From positions 1-64,000 of IMG/VR virus record IMGVR_UViG_3300035698_035310: DNA of 64,000 nucleotides. One strand, written 5' to 3'. The notes beneath the pieces are model-generated. The model was not told the DNA's origin and did not search any database. It saw nothing but the letters and a program-made list of their open reading frames with translations. Positions 348 through 55,067 of this stretch are shown here, piece by piece; the stretch's first letter is position 1, and the number at the start of each line of letters is the position of its first letter. The translations under genes were made by a program, and so were the position numbers.

Positions 348-1532
348 ATGATACCTATGTGGATTTTCATGGGTTTGGGTGCTTTTTCATTAGCGGCGTG
401 TGCTGCTTTTTTTAGTATTACCGGACTTGCTTCATTATATGCCGCCGCGTTTATACCGGTTGTTATAATGGCGACAGTAGTAGAATACGGAAAAGTAACG
501 GCGACTTTTTGGTTACACCAAAATCATAAAAAAGCCCCAAAGATATGGTGTGTATTATTAACACTGGCAGTTTTGGGCGCAATGGCAGTGACAAGTGGTG
601 GTGTTTATGGATATTTGTCTAAAGGACATCTAGAACAAGAAACACCCATCGTTGATACCAATCTTCAGATAGAACGGATAGATGGCAAGGTAACGTCGCA
701 CAAAAATGCGATAAAACGCGCACAGCAACGAATAGATCAGTTGGATGGCGTTGTGGAAAAGTTGATAGAATATTCTAGAATACGTGGCGCAGATGGCGCA
801 ACGGCGACTCGTAAATCACAAACCGGCGAACGTGCAGAAATGCAAGAATCTATTAATATGGCATATGTTGAAATAGATACATTGATGGAAAAACGATTGC
901 CATTAAGGCGAAAAACCGCAGCAATAGAAGCAAAGCTTGGGCCGGTTAAGTATCTAGCAGAGTTATTTGGCGCGGATACAGATACATCGGTGCAATGGTT
1001 TACGTTATTGATTGTTTTATTGCTCGATCCATTTGCTATTGTTATGGTTATAGCAACTAGTATTAATTATAATGAATGGAAAGAAGAAAAGAATAAAGCA
1101 AAAGACAAAGATGAAAAAACTCAAGCAGCGATAGAAACTATCGAAAATATAGTCGAAGTCATAAAAGAAGTTGAAGTCATAAAAGAAGTTGAAGTCATAA
1201 AAGAAGTTGAAGTTATAAAAGAAATTGAAGTTATAAAAGAAGTTGAAGTTATAAAAGAAGTTGAAGTTATAAAAGAAATTGAAGTTATAAAAGAAGTTGA
1301 AGTTATAAAAGAAGTTGAACCATTAACGATGGACACAATGTCTGATTTTCTTAACGATAAACATGTTCAAGCCGAATTGGTTAAAAATCCAGAACTTATT
1401 GCTACGGTGGAAACAATTTTAGATGAAGCTAAAATCAAAGATGAAAAAACAACATCGGATGGATGGATTTCGCGTATTGGTGAAAATATTAATTTTACAG
1501 CTAATCCCACAAGCACTGACGATACGAAATAA
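348..1532 (+). CDS. Membrane-anchored coiled-coil hypothetical protein with EVIKEV repeat
   Basis: N-terminal hydrophobic helices, coiled coil, further TM near residue 215-240; late promoter upstream. Confidence 0.8.
   Translation: MIPMWIFMGLGAFSLAACAAFFSITGLASLYAAAFIPVVIMATVVEYGKVTATFWLHQNHKKAPKIWCVLLTLAVLGAMAVTSGGVYGYLSKGHLEQETPIVDTNLQIERIDGKVTSHKNAIKRAQQRIDQLDGVVEKLIEYSRIRGADGATATRKSQTGERAEMQESINMAYVEIDTLMEKRLPLRRKTAAIEAKLGPVKYLAELFGADTDTSVQWFTLLIVLLLDPFAIVMVIATSINYNEWKEEKNKAKDKDEKTQAAIETIENIVEVIKEVEVIKEVEVIKEVEVIKEIEVIKEVEVIKEVEVIKEIEVIKEVEVIKEVEPLTMDTMSDFLNDKHVQAELVKNPELIATVETILDEAKIKDEKTTSDGWISRIGENINFTANPTSTDDTK
1155..1316 (+). repeat. Nine tandem 18-nt coding repeats (EVIKEV/EVIKEI)
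   Basis: gaagt(c/t)ataaaagaa(g/a)tt x9, in frame. Confidence 0.95.
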
Positions 1533-11192: not shown

Positions 11193-11945
11193 ATGTCAAA
11201 ATTTAACAACGCTGGCGTTGCACCAATCAATGTAACTACAATTCCAAATACACGCACCAAAGAAGGTTCACGATCATTTAAGTTTGATCATAAAATGGAA
11301 CTATATCAAACGGTAGTTACTACACTGTTTGGTGAAAGTAATTTTTATGAAAGCAAAGATGAACGCACCAGTCGTATTACACGTCTTGTTCGCAAGTGTG
11401 TAGAAGGCGGCGATGCACAATATGTTGCTAACCTTGCAGTATATGCTCGTGAGAAAATGTATCTTCGTTCTATTCCTGTATTTTTAACCGTTACACTTGC
11501 AAAAGAAATTCGCGCAGTTGATAGTTCCGACTACAACGTTCGATTATTGACAGGTCGTGTTATTCAACGTGCAGATGAAATTCGTGAAATGTTCGCTGCT
11601 GCGGAAGCAGTATTTGGTAATTCAAAGGATAATAAAACATTTAAGAAAGTTGTACCACGTGCGCTTCTTAAAGGTATCGCTGATTCGTTTAATAAATTTG
11701 ACGCTTACCAATTCAAAAAATGGTCCGGTGGAAAAGGTTCAATTAAATTCACCGACGTAATGCGCGTTGTTCATCCAACACCAAAGGATGAAGCACAGAA
11801 CGCAATCTTTAAGAACATCATGGAAGACACCTTGCCAGCAATCGATACTTGGGAAACCAATATCTCTGGTGATGGTTCTAATACAGAAAACTGGCAGTTA
11901 GTTGCTGATGCCAAAATAGAAAAAACTGCTTGGATTAGGGTATAA
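11193..11945 (+). CDS. rsr: TROVE/Ro60 RNA-binding protein, N-terminal half
   Basis: FGESNFYE, YAREKMYLRSIP, QRADEI, FDAYQFKKW, DVMRVVHPTP, TWET. Confidence 0.88.
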   Translation: MSKFNNAGVAPINVTTIPNTRTKEGSRSFKFDHKMELYQTVVTTLFGESNFYESKDERTSRITRLVRKCVEGGDAQYVANLAVYAREKMYLRSIPVFLTVTLAKEIRAVDSSDYNVRLLTGRVIQRADEIREMFAAAEAVFGNSKDNKTFKKVVPRALLKGIADSFNKFDAYQFKKWSGGKGSIKFTDVMRVVHPTPKDEAQNAIFKNIMEDTLPAIDTWETNISGDGSNTENWQLVADAKIEKTAWIRV

Positions 11946-17996: not shown

Positions 17997-18400
17997 ATAT
18001 TGTATGGTGTAGTGGTAACACGCTGCCTTTATCGGCGGAGCCGTGGGTTCGAGTCCTACTATGATATTTGGATTACGTTCAGTGTGCACACCGAACGCCA
18101 CAAATTATCTGTTATTATCGCGATAGTGATAGATAATGTTGGGTCACTTAGTTATGATTAAAGTTTTTAGGGTGTTCGTCTAGTGGATTAGGACGCGCCG
18201 CCTTGGGTAGTTGGAGTTCGATTCTCCTTAGCAACGGTTACGTAAATCCGCACGGTGAGACATTGGTTCGAATCCAATACATGTTAAAATAACGATTTCA
18301 CATGAGATGTATAGTTTTAATGGATAAATCAGGCATGAGCCTTGTGCGGCAAGATAGTGGGTTCGATTCCCCTTGCGTTGAATGTGAAATGATGCTATAT
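17997..18400 (+). ncRNA. Degenerate tRNA-like elements (17997-18068, ~18169-18285, ~18295-18390)
   Basis: Four GGTTCGA/GAGTTCGA T-arms and D-arm-like segments but defective anticodon or acceptor arms. Confidence 0.55.
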
Positions 18401-21570: not shown

Positions 21571-21664
21571 GTCGGATTTCCCTAACTGGTGTGGGTAGAA
21601 TCCATAATATGCACTGGGTGATCCTTATGTGCTGCACGTGGTTCGATTCCACGATCCGGCTCCA
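21571..21664 (+). tRNA. Atypical tRNA-like gene, CAT loop with long variable arm
   Basis: gtcggat/atccggc acceptor, T-arm, CCA; anticodon stem pairs poorly. Confidence 0.4.
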
Positions 21665-21994: not shown

Positions 21995-22296
21995 ATTATG
22001 CAGGCCATAGATGTTCCCTTTGTCCATTATTGGGAACTGTGGATGAAAACAAAAACGAAAGCAGGGTTAATGGACTGTGTGTAAGTTTTGTGATTAAAAG
22101 GGATGGTGCAAATCCAATTCCCCTGCGCCAAATTTGTTTGATCGTCTTTGGAATACAAGATACCGTTGTCGAAGGCGGAGACGTTGGTTCGAATCCAACT
22201 TGAACACTTATTGTTAGTAATGATTTTATGTACATAAATGATTTGCTAGGCGAAAGCCAATAGTTTGCTGGTTCTATTTCTTAAAAATCCTCTTAT

Positions 22297-22373
22297 GGTA
22301 GGTGTAGTGTTAACGGTTAGCACGTCAGACTGTGACTCTGAAAGTGCCGGTTCAAATCCGGTCATTTACCCCA
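22297..22373 (+). tRNA. tRNA-His(GTG) with encoded G-1
   Basis: tcaga-ctGTGac-tctga; G-1:C73; CCA. Confidence 0.9.
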
Positions 22374-22535: not shown

Positions 22536-22607
22536 ACCCCAGCCGATGCATTCGGACTCGAGTTTTCGAAACTTGACGGGAAGGTTTGATTCCTTCTTGG
22601 GGTGCCA
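22536..22607 (+). tRNA. tRNA-Arg(TCG)
   Basis: cgagt-ttTCGaa-acttg; short D arm; GCCA. Confidence 0.8.
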
Positions 22608-23683: not shown

Positions 23684-23769
23684 TCGGATATAGGAGAATT
23701 GGTAGACCCAGAAGATTGTTAATCTTCCGCAGCAATGCATTCCAGGTTCGAGTCCTGGTATCCGAGCCA
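23684..23769 (+). tRNA. tRNA-Asn(GTT) with long variable arm
   Basis: gaaga-ttGTTaa-tcttc; gca-gcaa-tgc V arm; GCCA. Confidence 0.8.
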
Positions 23770-27454: not shown

Positions 27455-27541
27455 AGAAGTACTTTGTATTGGTGAACTCAGCAGTCTCCAAAACTGTGTC
27501 GCATTTGTGACTGGTAGGTTCGAATCCTACTACTTCTGCCA
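27455..27541 (+). tRNA. tRNA-Trp(CCA) with long variable arm
   Basis: gcagt-ctCCAaa-actgt; gtcgc-attt-gtgac V arm; GCCA. Confidence 0.8.
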
Positions 27542-27932: not shown

Positions 27933-28003
27933 ACCTCCGCTGATGGTTCAGACATAAGCTTGCGAAGCTTGTTGGGAAAGTTCGATTCTTTTCGGGGGTT
28001 CCA
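27933..28003 (+). tRNA. tRNA-Arg(GCG)
   Basis: taagc-ttGCGaa-gcttg; short D arm; TCCA. Confidence 0.75.
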
Positions 28004-28368: not shown

Positions 28369-28446
28369 TGACTAGTAGCTCAGTGGTTTAGAGCGGGGAG
28401 TTCTAAACTCTCGACAGCGTTGGTTCAAATCCAACCTGGTCAACCA
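28369..28446 (+). tRNA. Amber suppressor tRNA (CTA)
   Basis: gggag-ttCTAaa-ctctc; intact cloverleaf; ACCA. Confidence 0.85.
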
Positions 28447-28453
28447 ATACTAA

Positions 28454-28625
28454 GCGGGTATCGTATAATGGTATTATCGCAGCCTTCCATGTGATATGTT
28501 TAACATATCTCAGGTTGAGCCATTTATTGGCTCCTTGAAGGTCGAGGGTTCAGACCCCATCCGGTTTAAGCCCGGTAGACCAACTTAAGCTGATGACGGG
28601 AGTTCGATTCTCCCTACCCGCTCCA
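28454..28625 (+). tRNA. tRNA-Gly(TCC) with 98-nt intron at 37/38 (28490-28587)
   Basis: 5' exon ends cagc-ctTCCa; 3' exon a-gctga...TCCA; exons make a standard Gly cloverleaf. Confidence 0.85.
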
Positions 28626-32682: not shown

Positions 32683-33666
32683 ATGGATAACAACAATTAC
32701 AACGATTTAAAACAGCGTTTGGTTAATGCAGGATGTTTCGAACGAGCGACATCGCATTATGTTCTACGTATTACAGCAATTCTAATTGCTTATGTGGGAG
32801 CATATTTTGTTCTGCTTACACAGCCACTAGGATTGGTTGCAGTGGGTGCATTGATTATTGCAGCCTTTGCCAGCGTTCAGGCTGGTTTCATTTCACACGA
32901 TGCTGGTGATGGCGGTATTACATCAAATAAGATGCTATCTACCGGTATGCGACAATTCTTTTTATCGTTTGTTACTGGTGTGAGTAGTTCATATTTTCAT
33001 GCACTACATAAAGTGCATCACAAAACAATGTTTAAAGGATCATCGAAATCATCCGACACAGTTTCAGAAAATGAATACGAAGGCAAATGGTTGAAGAAAT
33101 TAGTTTCACGTGATGGTTTGTTATTCATGGTAACGATGGTTACATTACGGGGATTCACATTCAAATTTGAAAGTGTAAAATATATGCTTAAACACGCCAA
33201 TAAAACCGCCGCAGATCAACTGTTGGTGGGATTGCACGTTGTAGCATGGCTGATCGTTCCAATGATGATTATTGGACCAGTAGCCATTCTAAACTATGCA
33301 TTATTGACGTTGTTGATTGGACCTTATATCGGAACGGTATTGGTTATTAATCATGCCGGTATGGTAACAGCAAACCGACAAATGCATTTGCCTAAATTTG
33401 AACGCGTAGTAAATACTACACGCAATCTTGGTGACGGCGTTTGGAACAATCTGTTCTTCGGTGGTGTAAACAACCATATTGAACACCATTTGTTTCCGGG
33501 TGTGCCAGTGCCAAATCTAGGTGAAGCTAGAAAGATTACTGAAGCCTTTTGTGAAGAACGTGGTATTAAATACACCAAAGCTTCATATTTCAGCGCATTA
33601 ATCGAAGCCAAAGACCATTTCAAGGGTTTGTCTTCACAGAGATTAGTTGCTGAAGCACTCAACTAA
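32683..33666 (+). CDS. Fatty acid desaturase family protein
   Basis: TM helices, HDAGD, HKVHH, HIEHHLFP; own TTGACA-N17-TATAAT promoter at 32624. Confidence 0.88.
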   Translation: MDNNNYNDLKQRLVNAGCFERATSHYVLRITAILIAYVGAYFVLLTQPLGLVAVGALIIAAFASVQAGFISHDAGDGGITSNKMLSTGMRQFFLSFVTGVSSSYFHALHKVHHKTMFKGSSKSSDTVSENEYEGKWLKKLVSRDGLLFMVTMVTLRGFTFKFESVKYMLKHANKTAADQLLVGLHVVAWLIVPMMIIGPVAILNYALLTLLIGPYIGTVLVINHAGMVTANRQMHLPKFERVVNTTRNLGDGVWNNLFFGGVNNHIEHHLFPGVPVPNLGEARKITEAFCEERGIKYTKASYFSALIEAKDHFKGLSSQRLVAEALN

Positions 33667-33676
33667 GGGAAACTAT

Positions 33677-34153
33677 ATGTTTAAATTTAATGTATGTAAT
33701 TACAGTGATTCACTGTATTCAATGGACAACTATACCAAGGCTATTGGTATAGTTGATCCAGATGAAAAAGTAACACCATCAGAAAAATATCATGTTGCAC
33801 GATGCCACGATATAGTAATGCAGGAACACCCTTGGGTGGCTCCCACAATAGACCAGTTTGTCGCAATTATGAATTTTGCAGAAGATTTTACAGACGATGA
33901 TGTTGTAATGATTCATTGCTCTGCTGGTATATCACGCAGCACTGCAACTGCCATATTGTTATTAATGTTGCATGGCGCTGACGAAGAAGAAGCATTTAAT
34001 GCTGTTGAACAAAATAGACCAAACATGAATCCAAACACATTGATTCTTCGCTTTGCTGATGAATTATTAGGAATGGATGGCGGTTTGATTGAATATCATA
34101 AACAATGGATGGCGAAACGGGTTATTAAACCAGTTAGTTTCGCAGGACAATAA
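33677..34153 (+). CDS. Protein tyrosine/dual-specificity phosphatase-like (start ATG 33677)
   Basis: IHCSAGISRSTA (CX5R), RP...PN. Confidence 0.88.
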   Translation: MFKFNVCNYSDSLYSMDNYTKAIGIVDPDEKVTPSEKYHVARCHDIVMQEHPWVAPTIDQFVAIMNFAEDFTDDDVVMIHCSAGISRSTATAILLLMLHGADEEEAFNAVEQNRPNMNPNTLILRFADELLGMDGGLIEYHKQWMAKRVIKPVSFAGQ

Positions 34154-34341: not shown

Positions 34342-34882
34342 ATGATAGATTTAGGATACATATTGGTAGCATTCATATGCTCTACCCCGATTGATACACC
34401 AGATGGGCACCACAAGTGCTACAGTGGTTCATACGGATGGCATGCGACTGTTAGCCAATGTAGGGCTGCTGGCAAGGAGAAGCTAGCAGTATGGGAACAG
34501 CACGGCTTACGTTTAGTCGCGGGAGTATGTAGAACACCCTTACCAGACGATGTTGAATATGAACAAGCGAGAAAAGAAAAATCATTTTAAAAGGATATTA
34601 TGAATGAATAAAATTTATGAATTTCATTGGGAAGTTGGTAGAATGGGTGACGTTGAAGGTTTGTTCGTTGCCGATGATGCTGACGTTGCTAATTTGATCG
34701 GTAAAGAAATTTACTTTGGTGAAATTCTTGGAAAACATTCCGAAGTTTATGGAACGTTGGAAAAGGGCGATCTTGTTGTGAAATCAGATGATCCAGAATT
34801 TGTTGAAAAATTCATCGAAATAATGGGTTACGGAACAGTATCTGGTTATAATCCATTTGATTATTATGATCCAGATCAATAA
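34342..34882 (+). CDS. Two hypothetical genes (34342-34590, 34604-34882)
   Basis: After promoter TTGACA ~34307. Confidence 0.6.
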
Positions 34883-34931
34883 TAAAATATAGACAAACAC
34901 TTCGTTTGGGTGTATAAATATAGAATAATAT

Positions 34932-35039
34932 TTCCAAGTAGCTCAGATGGTAGAGCGTCTGACTGTGGAACAGATGAGCCTAAAGCTTTGAAGTTCAAAT
35001 TTAATCAGAATGTCGGCGGTTCGATCCCGTCCTTGGAAG
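34932..35039 (+). tRNA. tRNA-Asn(GTT) body with 35-nt insertion in the anticodon
   Basis: tctga-ctGT[insert]Taa-tcaga; U1:A72, G73; no encoded CCA. Confidence 0.75.
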
Positions 35040-35178
35040 CAAATAAAAGTTTTAGGTCGTTCAATAAGCCATGTTTAGCGGCATGGTTAGGACAAGCGGG
35101 TATAACCGCTAAATGGTATGCTGCAATCGGGGTTAACACTTATTGCAACGAGGTGAAAATCCACCCATAGAAATCAAT

Positions 35179-35270
35179 GCCTCGGTAGCTCAGAAAAGCA
35201 ACGTAAGTTGTAGTGTAGTAGCAGGTGACTGAACCTCACCGTGTCGGTAGTTCGAATCTATCCTGGGGCA
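35179..35270 (+). tRNA. tRNA-Phe(GAA) with hairpin insertion in the D loop
   Basis: ggtga-ctGAAcc-tcacc; caac-gtaa-gttg in D loop; no CCA. Confidence 0.65.
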
Positions 35271-35314
35271 CAAATAATACAAAGGAAGATAACAATATCA
35301 AGTGAATAACATAT

Positions 35315-35390
35315 AGTTCCGTAGCTCAGTGGATAGAGCGCAACTTTGCGAAAGTTGAAGTCGGTGGTTCGATCCCACTCGGGACTGCCA
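35315..35390 (+). tRNA. tRNA-Arg(GCG)
   Basis: caact-ttGCGaa-agttg; GCCA. Confidence 0.9.
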
Positions 35391-35409
35391 ATAACGATGA
35401 GGATGTGAT

Positions 35410-35910
35410 ATGATCAGATTTTTTGATTACGAAGCAAGTGGATTGGACGCCGAGTCTTATCCTATTCAAGTTGCTTGGTGTGATGTGAATGGTGTTGGCG
35501 AATCGCATTACATTATACCAAAAGATGAATGGACATATTGGGATTTTCACGCACAACGAGATGTGCATCATATTTCCAGAAGTATGCTTTATGAACAAGG
35601 AAAGCCAGTTGAAATAATCATTGAATTAATGGAAAAGGCATTGATGTGCCGTGATGTATATTGCGATGGTGGTCACTTAGATGAACATTGGCATGAACAG
35701 TTATATGGTGATAACACCCCAACATTTTGGCTGAATGATTATTTTGCTTTTTTATATGATGTTGTAGACCCATTTAACAGAAAACCTAAATTACCGCATT
35801 TCTATACAGAAGTGCGTGCCGCTGCTAGATTAGAATGTCCACCTACGCATGATGCCTTGGCTGATTGCCAATTTCTTGCTACTGGATATAGATTAGCAAA
35901 AGCGTTATAA
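35410..35910 (+). CDS. DnaQ-like (DEDDh) 3'-5' exonuclease
   Basis: FDYEASG...D...HDALADC. Confidence 0.8.
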   Translation: MIRFFDYEASGLDAESYPIQVAWCDVNGVGESHYIIPKDEWTYWDFHAQRDVHHISRSMLYEQGKPVEIIIELMEKALMCRDVYCDGGHLDEHWHEQLYGDNTPTFWLNDYFAFLYDVVDPFNRKPKLPHFYTEVRAAARLECPPTHDALADCQFLATGYRLAKAL

Positions 35911-38343: not shown

Positions 38344-38971
38344 ATGCTTAGAGGAACACGTTTGATGACTGGTGCGGAAGCATCTACATACACGAACACT
38401 GTTGACACACTACGGAGGTGTCTTCATCGATAATAATGTCGAAGAAGTTATAGTTCCGTCGTTATGGGAACAGCAGACATTTATTGATAAAGCAGGAAGT
38501 GAAATTGTAAATCAGATGTGGGCATTTGAAGATAAGAAAAATCGCCCCGTATGTTTGATACCAGAAGTTACTGGTGTTATACAAGAAATGTGGCGCGATG
38601 ATTGGAGTAAATCCAAACCAAAGCCATATTCTATTTTTTATGTGAATCGTTGTTATCGTTATGAACGACCACAGAAGGGTAGATATAGAGAATTCACACA
38701 AATCGGATTAGAAATTCTTGGTGATACATCAGGGAATGATTACGATATGGCAATTAATTTATTGCAAAAGTGTCTCGATTGTTTTACTATAGATTATAAA
38801 CTTACAGAAACGGTACAACGCGGTTTGGCGTATTATGTTGATGATGGGTTTGAAGTCGAATGTGAGAAGTTGGGCGCACAGAAGCAAATTGCTGGTGGTG
38901 GTCGATACAATGAAGGTATTGGTTGGGCTATCGGCGTTGATAGATTAATATTGGGGATTGATGATGACTAG
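38344..38971 (+). pseudogene. hisS: Minimal histidyl-tRNA synthetase catalytic core (~208 aa) with +1 frameshift near 38413-38420
   Basis: AAAGGAG RBS, MLRGTR N-terminus in one frame; YRYERPQKGRYREFTQIGLE, RGLAYY, GGGRY, GWAIGVDRL in the other. Confidence 0.8.
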
Positions 38972-39565
38972 TTTACACCTTATTACTTCACCGCGTGAAT
39001 ATGTGACAACTATGACACATAACTCGGATTATCTTCAGTCTTGCAAGACTAATAAACCATCATGGAAAAAAGCGGATCGTTCATTTCATACACTCGAAAA
39101 TGGTGACAAATTATTTAATGTGTACTATGATAATGGTAAATTATGCGTGCAAAGATGGTATCAAAAAAGTGCTAAAATTGAATCTAATGATCTTCATCGA
39201 TTGGATGGTCCAGCATATATATCTTATTATGAAAATGGCATGTATTATCGATCTTCGTGGTGGATCAATGGAAATTCTATTTCAGGCAAAGTGATGCGAT
39301 CATGGTTAAAAGAAAATAATATTTCTTCGCCATATTCAGATGAAGATCAAATGGCAATAATATTAAGGTGGGGATGAAAACTGATATATCATCAGATGAT
39401 GAAAAAGAATTGATGTATTATATTAAAATGTATAGTCTTGGTTTTCATGGCGCAATTAATTTATTGCGATCTGATGGTATGTTAGAATATTTGGTTGATA
39501 CTGAAACAGTTAAGTTAGATATTTTAACACACGCAATAGCGAAGAAAATACGTGATACTAAATAA
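38958..39565 (+). CDS. HRLDGPA-repeat protein (38958-39377) and small hypothetical (39368-39565)
   Basis: LHRLDGPAYISY...WWING. Confidence 0.6.
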
Positions 39566-39973: not shown

Positions 39974-40621
39974 ATGACGAACAGAGTAGTTTTAGTAAGA
40001 CACGGACAAAGCACCGGAAATGCAGACGGTAGTTTTTATAAACACAATGTAGACGCCGCTGTATGTTTAACGCAACTTGGTGTAAGCCAAGCGTTACATG
40101 CTGGTCAAAAACTTGATGAATTGCGTGGTCATTTAAAATGGCCTTGGCACGGTGTTTTAGCGTTCACCTCAGAATATACAAGAGCGCAACAAACAGGTAG
40201 AATTGTTCTTGATAAAATGGGTCTTAAGCATATTGATATGACAATAACACCCGCGATAAATGAACGCATGTATGGTGATAATGACACGCCACCAGATTGG
40301 CATAAAAACGCTTATGCAGTATGTTCTAATGGTGAATCGTTATTAGCCGCACAGGCAAGATTTAACGGATGGTGGGCAACGATGGAGCCTAATCTATCAC
40401 AGAGAGATATCGTTTTATTTTGTCATGGTGAAATAATGAAAAGTATAACTGCGACATTACTCAATCTATCACCAACAGAATTGGTTAAAGTGTCGACACC
40501 GAATGCGGTCCCAGTTATATTTGAACGAACTGTTGATTCTTTAACGGGACGATCAACATACAATCCATCAATTCATACATTTAAACGTTATGATGATACA
40601 GCAACCGACGTAATTCATTAA
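39974..40621 (+). CDS. Histidine phosphatase (phosphoglycerate mutase family)
   Basis: LVRHGQS, S...RA.QT, INER..G, FCHGE. Confidence 0.9.
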   Translation: MTNRVVLVRHGQSTGNADGSFYKHNVDAAVCLTQLGVSQALHAGQKLDELRGHLKWPWHGVLAFTSEYTRAQQTGRIVLDKMGLKHIDMTITPAINERMYGDNDTPPDWHKNAYAVCSNGESLLAAQARFNGWWATMEPNLSQRDIVLFCHGEIMKSITATLLNLSPTELVKVSTPNAVPVIFERTVDSLTGRSTYNPSIHTFKRYDDTATDVIH

Positions 40622-54041: not shown

Positions 54042-55067
54042 TTGAAAATGTTATTAGAACGTGATAAATTTAGAGAAGGTGTGTTTGAACGCGATAGTCA
54101 TAAGTGCGTCATGTGTGATGCACCTGCTCAAGATGCTCATCACATCATTGAACGTAGGCTCTTTACGGATGGTGGCTATTACTTAGATAATGGGTCTAGC
54201 CTGTGTGGTGAACATCATTTAGCAGCCGAATATACAACGCTTTCGCCACAAGAAATTCGTGAAAAAATAGGCATCACTAAAGTCGTATTACCAGAGCATT
54301 TATACCGCGATCAAGAGTATGACAAATGGGGCAACCCTATGTTACCTAACGGCACACGCCTTAAGGGTGATTTGTTTGATGATTTGTCGGTTCAGAAAGC
54401 ATTAAAGGCTGGTGGCGTTTTGGGAAGTTTTACGCACTTAGTGAAATATCCAAGAACATATCATGTAATGTGGAGTCCCGGTTTAAGTAATGATGACCGT
54501 GCGCATAACTCATTGGATCAGTTTGAAGGAAAAAATGTTGTCGTCCATTTGAAGATGGACGGTGAAAACGCAAGTTTTTATAATGATCATTATCACGCAC
54601 GTTCGTTAGATACTGTTAATCATCCATCTCGCAAATGGGCTAAAATGCTTCATGCGCGTATTATGGGTGATATACCAGAAAGCTGGCGTGTGTGTGCTGA
54701 GAATTTGTATGCTGAACATTCGATTCATTATGACGATCTTGAAGCCTTCGTTCTTGCTTTTTCTATATGGAATGAAAAAAATGAATGCCTTGGTTGGGAT
54801 GAAACCCAAGATTGGTTTGAGTTGTTAGAAGTTCCACAAGTTCCAGTTTTGTATGAAGGATTATTTTCAGAAGAAAAGTTGCATGAAATTGAATCAACGC
54901 TTGATTTTGAAATTGATGAAGGATATGTGATGAGAACGCGAGATAGTTTCCATTATAATGACTTTCGGCAAAATGTCGCTAAATATGTTCGTAAAGGGCA
55001 TGTTCAACATTCAACCGAAGGACACTGGATCAATCGACCAATTACGCCTAATGAACTGAGAAAATAA
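54042..55067 (+). CDS. HNH domain-RNA ligase (Rnl2-like nucleotidyltransferase) fusion
   Basis: CVMC...DAHHI...N..LC..HH; KYPRTYH, KMDGEN, AEN, EGYVMR, KYVR. Confidence 0.85.
   Translation: MKMLLERDKFREGVFERDSHKCVMCDAPAQDAHHIIERRLFTDGGYYLDNGSSLCGEHHLAAEYTTLSPQEIREKIGITKVVLPEHLYRDQEYDKWGNPMLPNGTRLKGDLFDDLSVQKALKAGGVLGSFTHLVKYPRTYHVMWSPGLSNDDRAHNSLDQFEGKNVVVHLKMDGENASFYNDHYHARSLDTVNHPSRKWAKMLHARIMGDIPESWRVCAENLYAEHSIHYDDLEAFVLAFSIWNEKNECLGWDETQDWFELLEVPQVPVLYEGLFSEEKLHEIESTLDFEIDEGYVMRTRDSFHYNDFRQNVAKYVRKGHVQHSTEGHWINRPITPNELRK

Follow-up and report, generated by a model that had tools for sequence, protein, structure and literature searches.

A jumbo-phage tRNA-Asn gene with a mini-intron in its anticodon

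Bacteria and their viruses are thought to have only self-splicing tRNA introns (group I, rarely group II), and the group I introns in the anticodon loops of bacterial tRNA-Leu (UAA), fMet, Arg and Ile depend on a catalytic core (P3-P9) of roughly 200 nt or more, follow a U at the 5' splice site and end in G. The short, non-catalytic tRNA introns of archaea and eukaryotes are removed by proteins, i.e., the EndA/Sen endonuclease and the RtcB or Trl1 ligase, which recognise a bulge-helix-bulge (BHB) of two 3-nt bulges flanking a 4-bp helix, with the splice sites in the bulges and usually at position 37/38. The nearest precedent in phages is the "enigmatic" tRNA introns of Lak megaphages (Devoto et al. 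2019, PMC6784885; preprint 10.1101/356790), short intervening sequences missed by bacterial tRNA finders and without an Rfam class, which were reported without a mechanism in Phe(GAA), Gly(TCC), Thr(TGT) and Tyr(GTA). Elements resembling tRNAs are also cut out of longer RNAs by RNase P and RNase Z, as in mitochondrial tRNA punctuation, MALAT1 mascRNA and RNase P minihelix substrates, and phage T4 seals tRNAs broken by the PrrC anticodon nuclease with Pnkp and Rnl1. Here we describe a tRNA-Asn gene whose anticodon is split by a 35-nt hairpin of neither the group I nor the BHB type, and which belongs to a conserved family found in many jumbo phages, two of them cultured.

The analysed window is the first 64,000 nt of the 359-kb IMG/VR contig IMGVR_UViG_3300035698_035310, and the same sequence occurs in other assemblies on contigs of up to 571 kb. 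The window is 36% G+C and encodes EF-G, IF3, ClpX, AspRS, HisRS-like pieces, a peptidoglycan hydrolase, an OmpA-domain protein and about 30 tRNA genes, so this is a huge bacteriophage. The tRNA model of Rfam (RF00005) matches 34932-35039 end to end (54.1 bits against a gathering threshold of 29, E 7e-9 over the window, model positions 1-71) with an insertion of about 38 nt in the anticodon loop, and 42 nt lie between the anticodon stem strands where 7 are expected. Standard ARAGORN misses the gene, and with introns allowed it calls tRNA-His with a wrong 17-nt intron. An independent Logan assembly of SRR7528202 is identical over 20.5 kb around the locus, though it may derive from the same raw reads as the JGI contig. 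An 86-codon ORF running straight through the gene (34910-35170; positions 9501-9761 of L056, where a public assembly annotates it as a gene) is almost certainly spurious. The original prediction, which described a tRNA-Asn body with a 35-nt hairpin inserted in the anticodon, GAAC/GTTC and AGC/GCT helices and no clear BHB, was correct in every detail of what it observed.

The 5' exon (34932-34966, plus strand, as are the parts below) comprises the acceptor 5' strand (34932-34938), the D arm, the anticodon stem 5' strand TCTGA (34958-34962) and the loop bases C32, U33, G34 and U35 (34963-34966), and the best BLAST matches of this half are phage tRNA-Asn genes. The intervening sequence (34967-35001) lies between anticodon bases 35 and 36 and starts with an unpaired purine, G (34967), followed by the 5' strand of helix P1, GAAC (34968-34971). 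The inner element (34972-34992) is a purine-rich 5x5 internal loop (AGAUG/UUGAA) allowing tandem G.A/A.G pairs, a 3-bp helix P2 (AGC/GCU, 34977-34979 with 34985-34987) and a CUAAA loop, after which come the 3' strand of P1, GTTC (34993-34996), and a single-stranded A-rich tail, AAAUU (34997-35001). The 3' exon (35002-35039) carries U36, A37 and A38, the anticodon stem 3' strand TCAGA (35005-35009), the variable loop, the T arm (35015-35031), the acceptor 3' strand (35032-35038) and the discriminator G73 (35039). The acceptor strands read TTCCAAG/CTTGGAA, and no CCA is encoded, the next bases being CAA. Removal of 34967-35001 gives the loop CUGUUAA with a GUU anticodon, which exists only in this register, while other 35-nt registers give CUGUGGA or CUGUGAA (His) or CUUUUAA (Lys).

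A survey of homologs had been proposed beforehand as a check, with lack of conservation of the insert counting against the reading, and it showed that the insert is conserved: 17 further interrupted tRNA-Asn genes were found, which indicates that the locus is more than chance. A degenerate pattern for a tRNA-Asn-like body with a long anticodon-loop insert, run on JGI metagenomes, returned mostly archaeal-type tRNA-Asn genes with canonical introns, which are unrelated, together with a distinct group resembling the window. Family-specific patterns in IMG/VR added huge-phage contigs of 162-453 kb (our loci L177-L197; L060 is also a huge-phage contig), and other members lie in short metagenome fragments carrying tRNA arrays. 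BLAST with one member found the element, unannotated, in two cultured jumbo phages, Agrobacterium phage Atu_ph07 (NC_042013.1, about 323,905-324,023, minus strand) and Salicola phage SCTP-2 (MF360958.1, about 298,736-298,850). Wherever flanking sequence is available, the genes sit in phage-type tRNA arrays. All members carry the insert at the same place, between CUGU and UAA, although CTGT, and for most later members CTGTG and TAATC, was fixed by our search patterns and no motif-free census was made. Only the two BLAST-found members are free of that bias, and the 3' flank is tested only by these two and the 7 distinct members from the metagenome scan, in which TA before ATC was not required. 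In a scan of bacterial and archaeal genomes that returned at least 120 matches, none of the 120 inspected was a member, which suggests that the family is absent from cellular genomes but does not prove it.

Other routes to relatives gave little. Searches of GenBank phages with 6 kb and with 400 nt of the locus returned no relative, synteny through the DUF7275 neighbour led to 4 distant loci with no comparable tRNA, an exact pattern for the 3' half in IMG/VR hit only the window's own contig, and homologues of neighbouring proteins yielded only an identical copy and short contigs. The first viral pattern scan was dominated by giant-virus (GVMAG) contigs (L006-L055), many of which carry eukaryote-type tRNA-Tyr(GTA) genes with canonical 37/38 introns of 15-35 nt, unrelated to the phage family. 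Among genes neighbouring the interrupted tRNA, the only one shared across loci was a dual-specificity (PTP-type) phosphatase, which lies about 0.8 kb upstream in the window (33647-34153) and has a homologue (34% identity; L190 3316-3681) within about 400 nt of the interrupted tRNA-Asn in the 453-kb phage contig behind L181/L190. The insert occurs once in the window, even with 3 mismatches allowed, which speaks against a repeat or MITE.

In 17 of 18 distinct members the insert has the same plan, L191 departing in its tail. It starts with one unpaired purine (G in 17 members and A in one), P1 begins at intron base 2 and ends 5 nt before the 3' junction, and the 5-nt tail is A-rich, most commonly AAAAG. 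With the register fixed by the junctions and no alignment freedom, 69 of 72 outer P1 pairs are formed across the 18 members, against 14-35 of 72 in registers off the P1 diagonal, with two to five pair types per position, and folding supports the helix as well. Fourteen long forms (43-50 nt) align cleanly; their P1 and inner hairpin are 94% paired, 10 of 11 pairs show compensatory changes, 0 of 500 shuffles reach the covariation score, and slid controls pair at 24-48%. The inner hairpin of the long forms is a T-arm look-alike with a 5-bp stem, an invariant closing G-C and a 7-nt loop of UUCGAUU or close to it (UUCRAnn), its 3' strand usually running straight into P1' as the T stem runs into the acceptor stem in a tRNA, and an A/G-rich linker containing AGG lying on its 5' side. 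The only Rfam match to a long-form intron on its own is a weak, non-significant 5'-truncated tRNA alignment that places tail base 1 at position 72 and tail base 2 at the discriminator.

The window copy and the relatives L094 (a metagenome fragment) and L101 are short forms (34-35 nt) that lack the T-arm-like hairpin and form a subclass in which a purine-rich internal loop and a small hairpin take its place. L094 and L101 have P1, AA/AA and P2, and L101 shares the CUAAA loop with the window. The window copy nevertheless fits the family in its insertion site, its leading purine and its P1 register, and a covariance model built only from the long forms finds 34963-35004 as its best hit in the whole window, on both strands with filters off, aligned end to end (16.9 bits, E about 0.08), the runner-up hits being genuine T arms of the window's tRNAs.

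Three lines of evidence favour Asn over His, so that the ambiguity raised by the original prediction, in which the splice register would decide between the two, is resolved by comparison. The body has U1:A72 and G73, in agreement with the bacterial Asn identity set (which includes G73 and the anticodon), as do 17 of 18 members and the three intact phage tRNA-Asn genes compared, whereas the G-1 paired with C73 of a bacterial tRNA-His is absent, position -1 being T. Two intact tRNA-Asn genes, from Sinorhizobium phage Phosso and from the family locus L064 (Asn1), align with the gap exactly between CTGT and TAA, and L064 Asn1 is about 85% identical to the window's exons by hand count, with compensatory stem differences. 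Virtual splicing at 35/36 gives a normal tRNA-Asn(gtt) by ARAGORN in 18 of 18 members, whereas in Atu_ph07 the first intron base is A and the His register would give GUA. A tRNA-His(GUG) on an Asn-like body, perhaps charged by the phage's own HisRS-like gene, therefore appears very unlikely, although CUGUG is present in 17 of 18 members (the G having been imposed by our later patterns) and HisRS-like ORFs lie 3.3 kb downstream. A proper tRNA-His with G-1, C73 and CCA already exists at 22298-22373, and the HisRS-like gene (38372-39565) appears split into three consecutive ORFs in different frames (199, 139 and 65 aa), of which only the first was scanned and carries class II core motifs; it may be frameshifted, recoded or decaying.

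Across the 18 members the acceptor stem pairs at 123 of 126 positions, the anticodon stem at 90 of 90 and the T stem at 90 of 90, with up to six standard pair types at a position, which rules out family-wide decay. The genome paper of Atu_ph07 reports tRNAs for all amino acids except Asn and Thr (PMC6102473), and in the 50-kb tRNA region examined Rfam finds exactly two tRNAs that ARAGORN misses, the interrupted Asn gene and a 106-nt Thr-like gene (NC_042013.1 335108-335213, equal to 40108-40213, minus strand, of our extract L322; 54.7 bits). The 5' half of the latter is 93% identical to the tRNA-Thr of Acinetobacter phage Acj9, its 33-nt hairpin insert gives the loop UUUGUAA (Thr UGU) if cut at 35/36, and an HNH endonuclease gene (gp465) lies directly beside it. 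The hidden genes thus fill precisely the reported gaps, as expected if they are spliced into working tRNAs and not expected for decoys.

The window holds at least two more interrupted tRNAs. A tRNA-Gly(UCC) gene (28454-28625) with a body very like E. coli glyT, U73 and an encoded CCA is interrupted in the anticodon loop, at 36/37 or 37/38, by a strongly structured insert of roughly 98 nt (fold z -4.1); Rfam scores it at 38.9 bits only in a small-region scan, ARAGORN misses it, and it is probably the other interrupted tRNA implied by the original prediction, which counted the Asn gene as a second one. The 3' part of its insert (28540-28586: GGTC ... CCGGTTTAAGCCCGG TA GACC AACTT) closely resembles by eye the tRNA-Asn intron of L177 (CCGGTTCAAGCCCGG TA TGCC AAAAG), including the 5-nt tail, but the covariance model gave no significant hit there. 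A tRNA-Phe(GAA)-like gene (35179-35270, Rfam 36.7 bits), 140 nt downstream of the Asn gene, has about 20 extra nt in the D loop forming a GCAAC-GUAA-GUUGU hairpin with a GNRA tetraloop, C at position 37 and a mismatched D-stem pair. The only other GUU tRNA of the window (23684-23769) has U1:A72/G73 and a long variable arm (type II shape), unusual for Asn, and as a similar gene (1089-1171, minus strand) sits next to the short-form gene in L094, the pair may travel together. Neither ARAGORN nor Rfam at gathering finds the tRNA-like genes at 21571-21664, 22135-22210, 22536-22607, 27455-27541 and 27933-28003, which have good acceptor and T arms and mostly an encoded CCA, and include a long-variable-arm one with a CCA (Trp) anticodon loop and two of about 70 nt with reduced D arms and Arg-type loops. 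A tRNA with a CUA anticodon, an amber-suppressor candidate labelled Pyl by ARAGORN, and a tRNA with a 6-nt anticodon loop lie at 28369-28446 and 17997-18068, respectively. A weak TROVE (Ro60-like) domain match at 11193-11945 (E 2e-4, below the Pfam cut-off) could mean that some of the odd tRNA-like genes are Y-RNA-like, since Ro60 proteins bind Y RNAs, some of which mimic tRNAs.

We propose, with a probability of about 0.6, that the locus is a functional tRNA-Asn(GUU) gene whose insert must be cut out of the transcript and the two halves joined to allow decoding. The analysis itself demonstrates the full tRNA with its insert, the family, its covarying structure and intact exons, the gap against intact genes, the two hidden genes of Atu_ph07 and the distribution of the ligase described below, whereas everything concerning removal is inference, as no expression or junction data exist. 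The insert is too small for a group I ribozyme and has no BHB, and removal is most likely done by proteins or RNPs that read the hairpin and its fixed distance to both junctions, the interior varying freely. In this view the long-form intron copies the acceptor/T-arm half of a tRNA, with 1 + 6 + 5 = 12 layers from the 5' junction to the T-like loop, equal to the acceptor plus T stack of a tRNA, if the first intron base is counted as stacking on tail base 1, and a 4-nt 3' overhang like N73-CCA; the short forms would keep about the same height, about 13 layers under a small loop. This is the geometry RNase P reads, and a tRNA-end-processing nuclease such as RNase P could cut between U35 and the purine, leaving a 3'-OH, while a second endonuclease of host or phage would cut after the tail, since canonical RNase Z would cut 3 nt upstream of the required 3' junction. 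If that cut leaves a 5'-phosphate, the halves could be sealed directly by an ATP-dependent phage RNA ligase.

The window encodes such a candidate at 54042-55067, a fusion of an N-terminal HNH nuclease domain (residues about 8-70) with an RNA ligase (PF09414; phrog_24030), and HNH nucleases also leave 3'-OH and 5'-phosphate ends. The ligase family occurs in only 34 of 50,697 phage records, including SCTP-2, Atu_ph07 (ligase domain only) and the Lak phages (partial matches, 21% of the query), with full-length homologues only in a few jumbo phages (SCTP-2, RsoM2USA, Caulobacter jumbo phages, Acinetobacter ME3) and in an archaeal virus. Ralstonia phage RsoM2USA, which also carries a CUA suppressor, has the ligase but was reported to have tRNAs for every amino acid except Ile (PMC8504454), which we take to mean an ordinary tRNA-Asn. 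The ligase is therefore not diagnostic of the intron, and the association, for which phylogenetic profiling of nucleases and ligases was not carried out, is suggestive only and confounded by relatedness among these phages. It is possible, though we consider it unlikely, that jumbo phages of bacteria have their own tRNA splicing pathway, a third kind beside group I and BHB endonuclease splicing, in which a mimic of the acceptor/T-arm half, or a hairpin of equal height, recruits RNase P at the 5' junction and a second nuclease after the 4-nt overhang before ligation. The supply of tRNA-Asn, and in some phages of Thr, Gly and others, would then depend on phage-controlled processing or be shielded from host anticodon nucleases until maturation.

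The interpretation offered by the original prediction, that the gene supports a splicing or decoy strategy rather than a one-off accident, is partly supported, since the pattern is real but a decoy is less likely than splicing. An insert that is never removed would leave a tRNA-Asn-shaped molecule with a blocked anticodon, acting as a decoy or sponge, for example for a host anticodon nuclease aimed at GUN tRNAs, for tRNA-guanine transglycosylase or for AsnRS, or as some other stable tRNA-like RNA. A decoy would also need a conserved body and insert, the U33-G34-U35 segment is kept and presented next to a stable hairpin, L064 carries two intact tRNA-Asn genes beside the interrupted one, which is thus not always the only source, the phage carries RNA-repair-type genes, and phage tRNAs evade anticodon nucleases (PMC10264068). 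However, the 3' flank UAA, which restores a canonical Asn loop, is kept in every member where it was not imposed by the search, a cutting enzyme but not a plug would need the same fixed junction distances in long and short forms, and the gaps in the tRNA set of Atu_ph07 also favour splicing, so that a decoy is unlikely but not excluded.

It is still less likely that the window copy is a pseudogene, i.e., a tRNA-Asn gene killed by insertion of a small hairpin element or a once-spliceable copy with a decayed intron. This copy is the shortest and least canonical member, with only 4 bp in P1, the tail AAAUU, a weak, partly decayed P2 and no encoded CCA, it could be a dying copy, the window has many odd or duplicated tRNA genes, and folding of the whole precursor is only marginally better than shuffles (z -1.8). 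On the other hand, all four tRNA stems are intact, the differences from an intact phage tRNA-Asn are compensatory, the two other diverged short forms keep the same layout with covarying P1 and P2, and the insert is not a repeat in the window.

A conserved 35-50-nt intron inside the anticodon, with covarying structure and intact exons, implies a removal pathway that has not been described, and there is a real chance that this pathway is categorically new. Standard tools under-count jumbo-phage tRNAs, and because the family occurs in two cultured phage-host pairs, the question raised by the Lak introns becomes directly testable. The T-arm-like intron also suggests a concrete link between tRNA end processing, RNA repair ligases and phage-host conflict over tRNAs.

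Short tRNA introns in phages are thus already known, and new here are a family with covariation-supported structure, a junction inside the anticodon, a T-arm-mimicking intron with a short-form derivative, and cultured phages that carry it. Our literature searches found no paper on jumbo-phage tRNA introns beyond Devoto et al., where no family-wide structure, covariation, 35/36 position or cultured-phage example was described and no Asn intron was reported. One Lak intron (Thr-TGT) was itself predicted to look like a tRNA, and the junction found there by comparing alleles with and without the intron is not the canonical one; the Lak intron sequences (Supplementary Table 6 of that paper) were not retrieved, and only their description was compared. 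With the BHB introns our family shares a short, non-catalytic insert in the anticodon loop, a helix next to the junctions and the need for an endonuclease and a ligase, but hand threading of the canonical and the Asn registers gives 0-1 of the 4 central BHB pairs, the only 4-bp helix with 3-nt neighbours (GAAC/GUUC) would leave a 17-nt loop, the junction is at 35/36, and the hosts, where known, are bacteria (Agrobacterium, Salicola), which are not known to have a tRNA splicing endonuclease. With the group I introns, the only established tRNA introns of bacteria, which can lie inside the anticodon, it shares that position, a 5' exon ending in U and, in 12 of 18 members, a terminal G, but the insert is far smaller, lacks a catalytic core, has no Rfam group I match at gathering or at E<=1 and in the window ends in U. 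Small self-cleaving ribozymes (hammerhead, twister, pistol, hatchet and others) were not matched either, a permissive Rfam scan of 34850-35450 returning only tRNA and one chance plastid UTR match. The long-form intron, as an acceptor/T-arm minihelix with a tRNA-like stack height and 3' overhang, is the kind of element that RNase P and RNase Z cut out of longer RNAs, but no case is known to us in which such an element sits inside a tRNA anticodon and the flanks are re-joined, its 3' junction lies 3 nt beyond the canonical RNase Z site, and the window's short form has no T loop. In T4 tRNA repair a break in a tRNA anticodon loop is sealed by a phage ATP-dependent RNA ligase, and the window encodes an RNA ligase of the same superfamily, although no Pnkp was found among the window ORFs scanned, and while T4 repairs damage to an uninterrupted tRNA, here the gene itself is interrupted.
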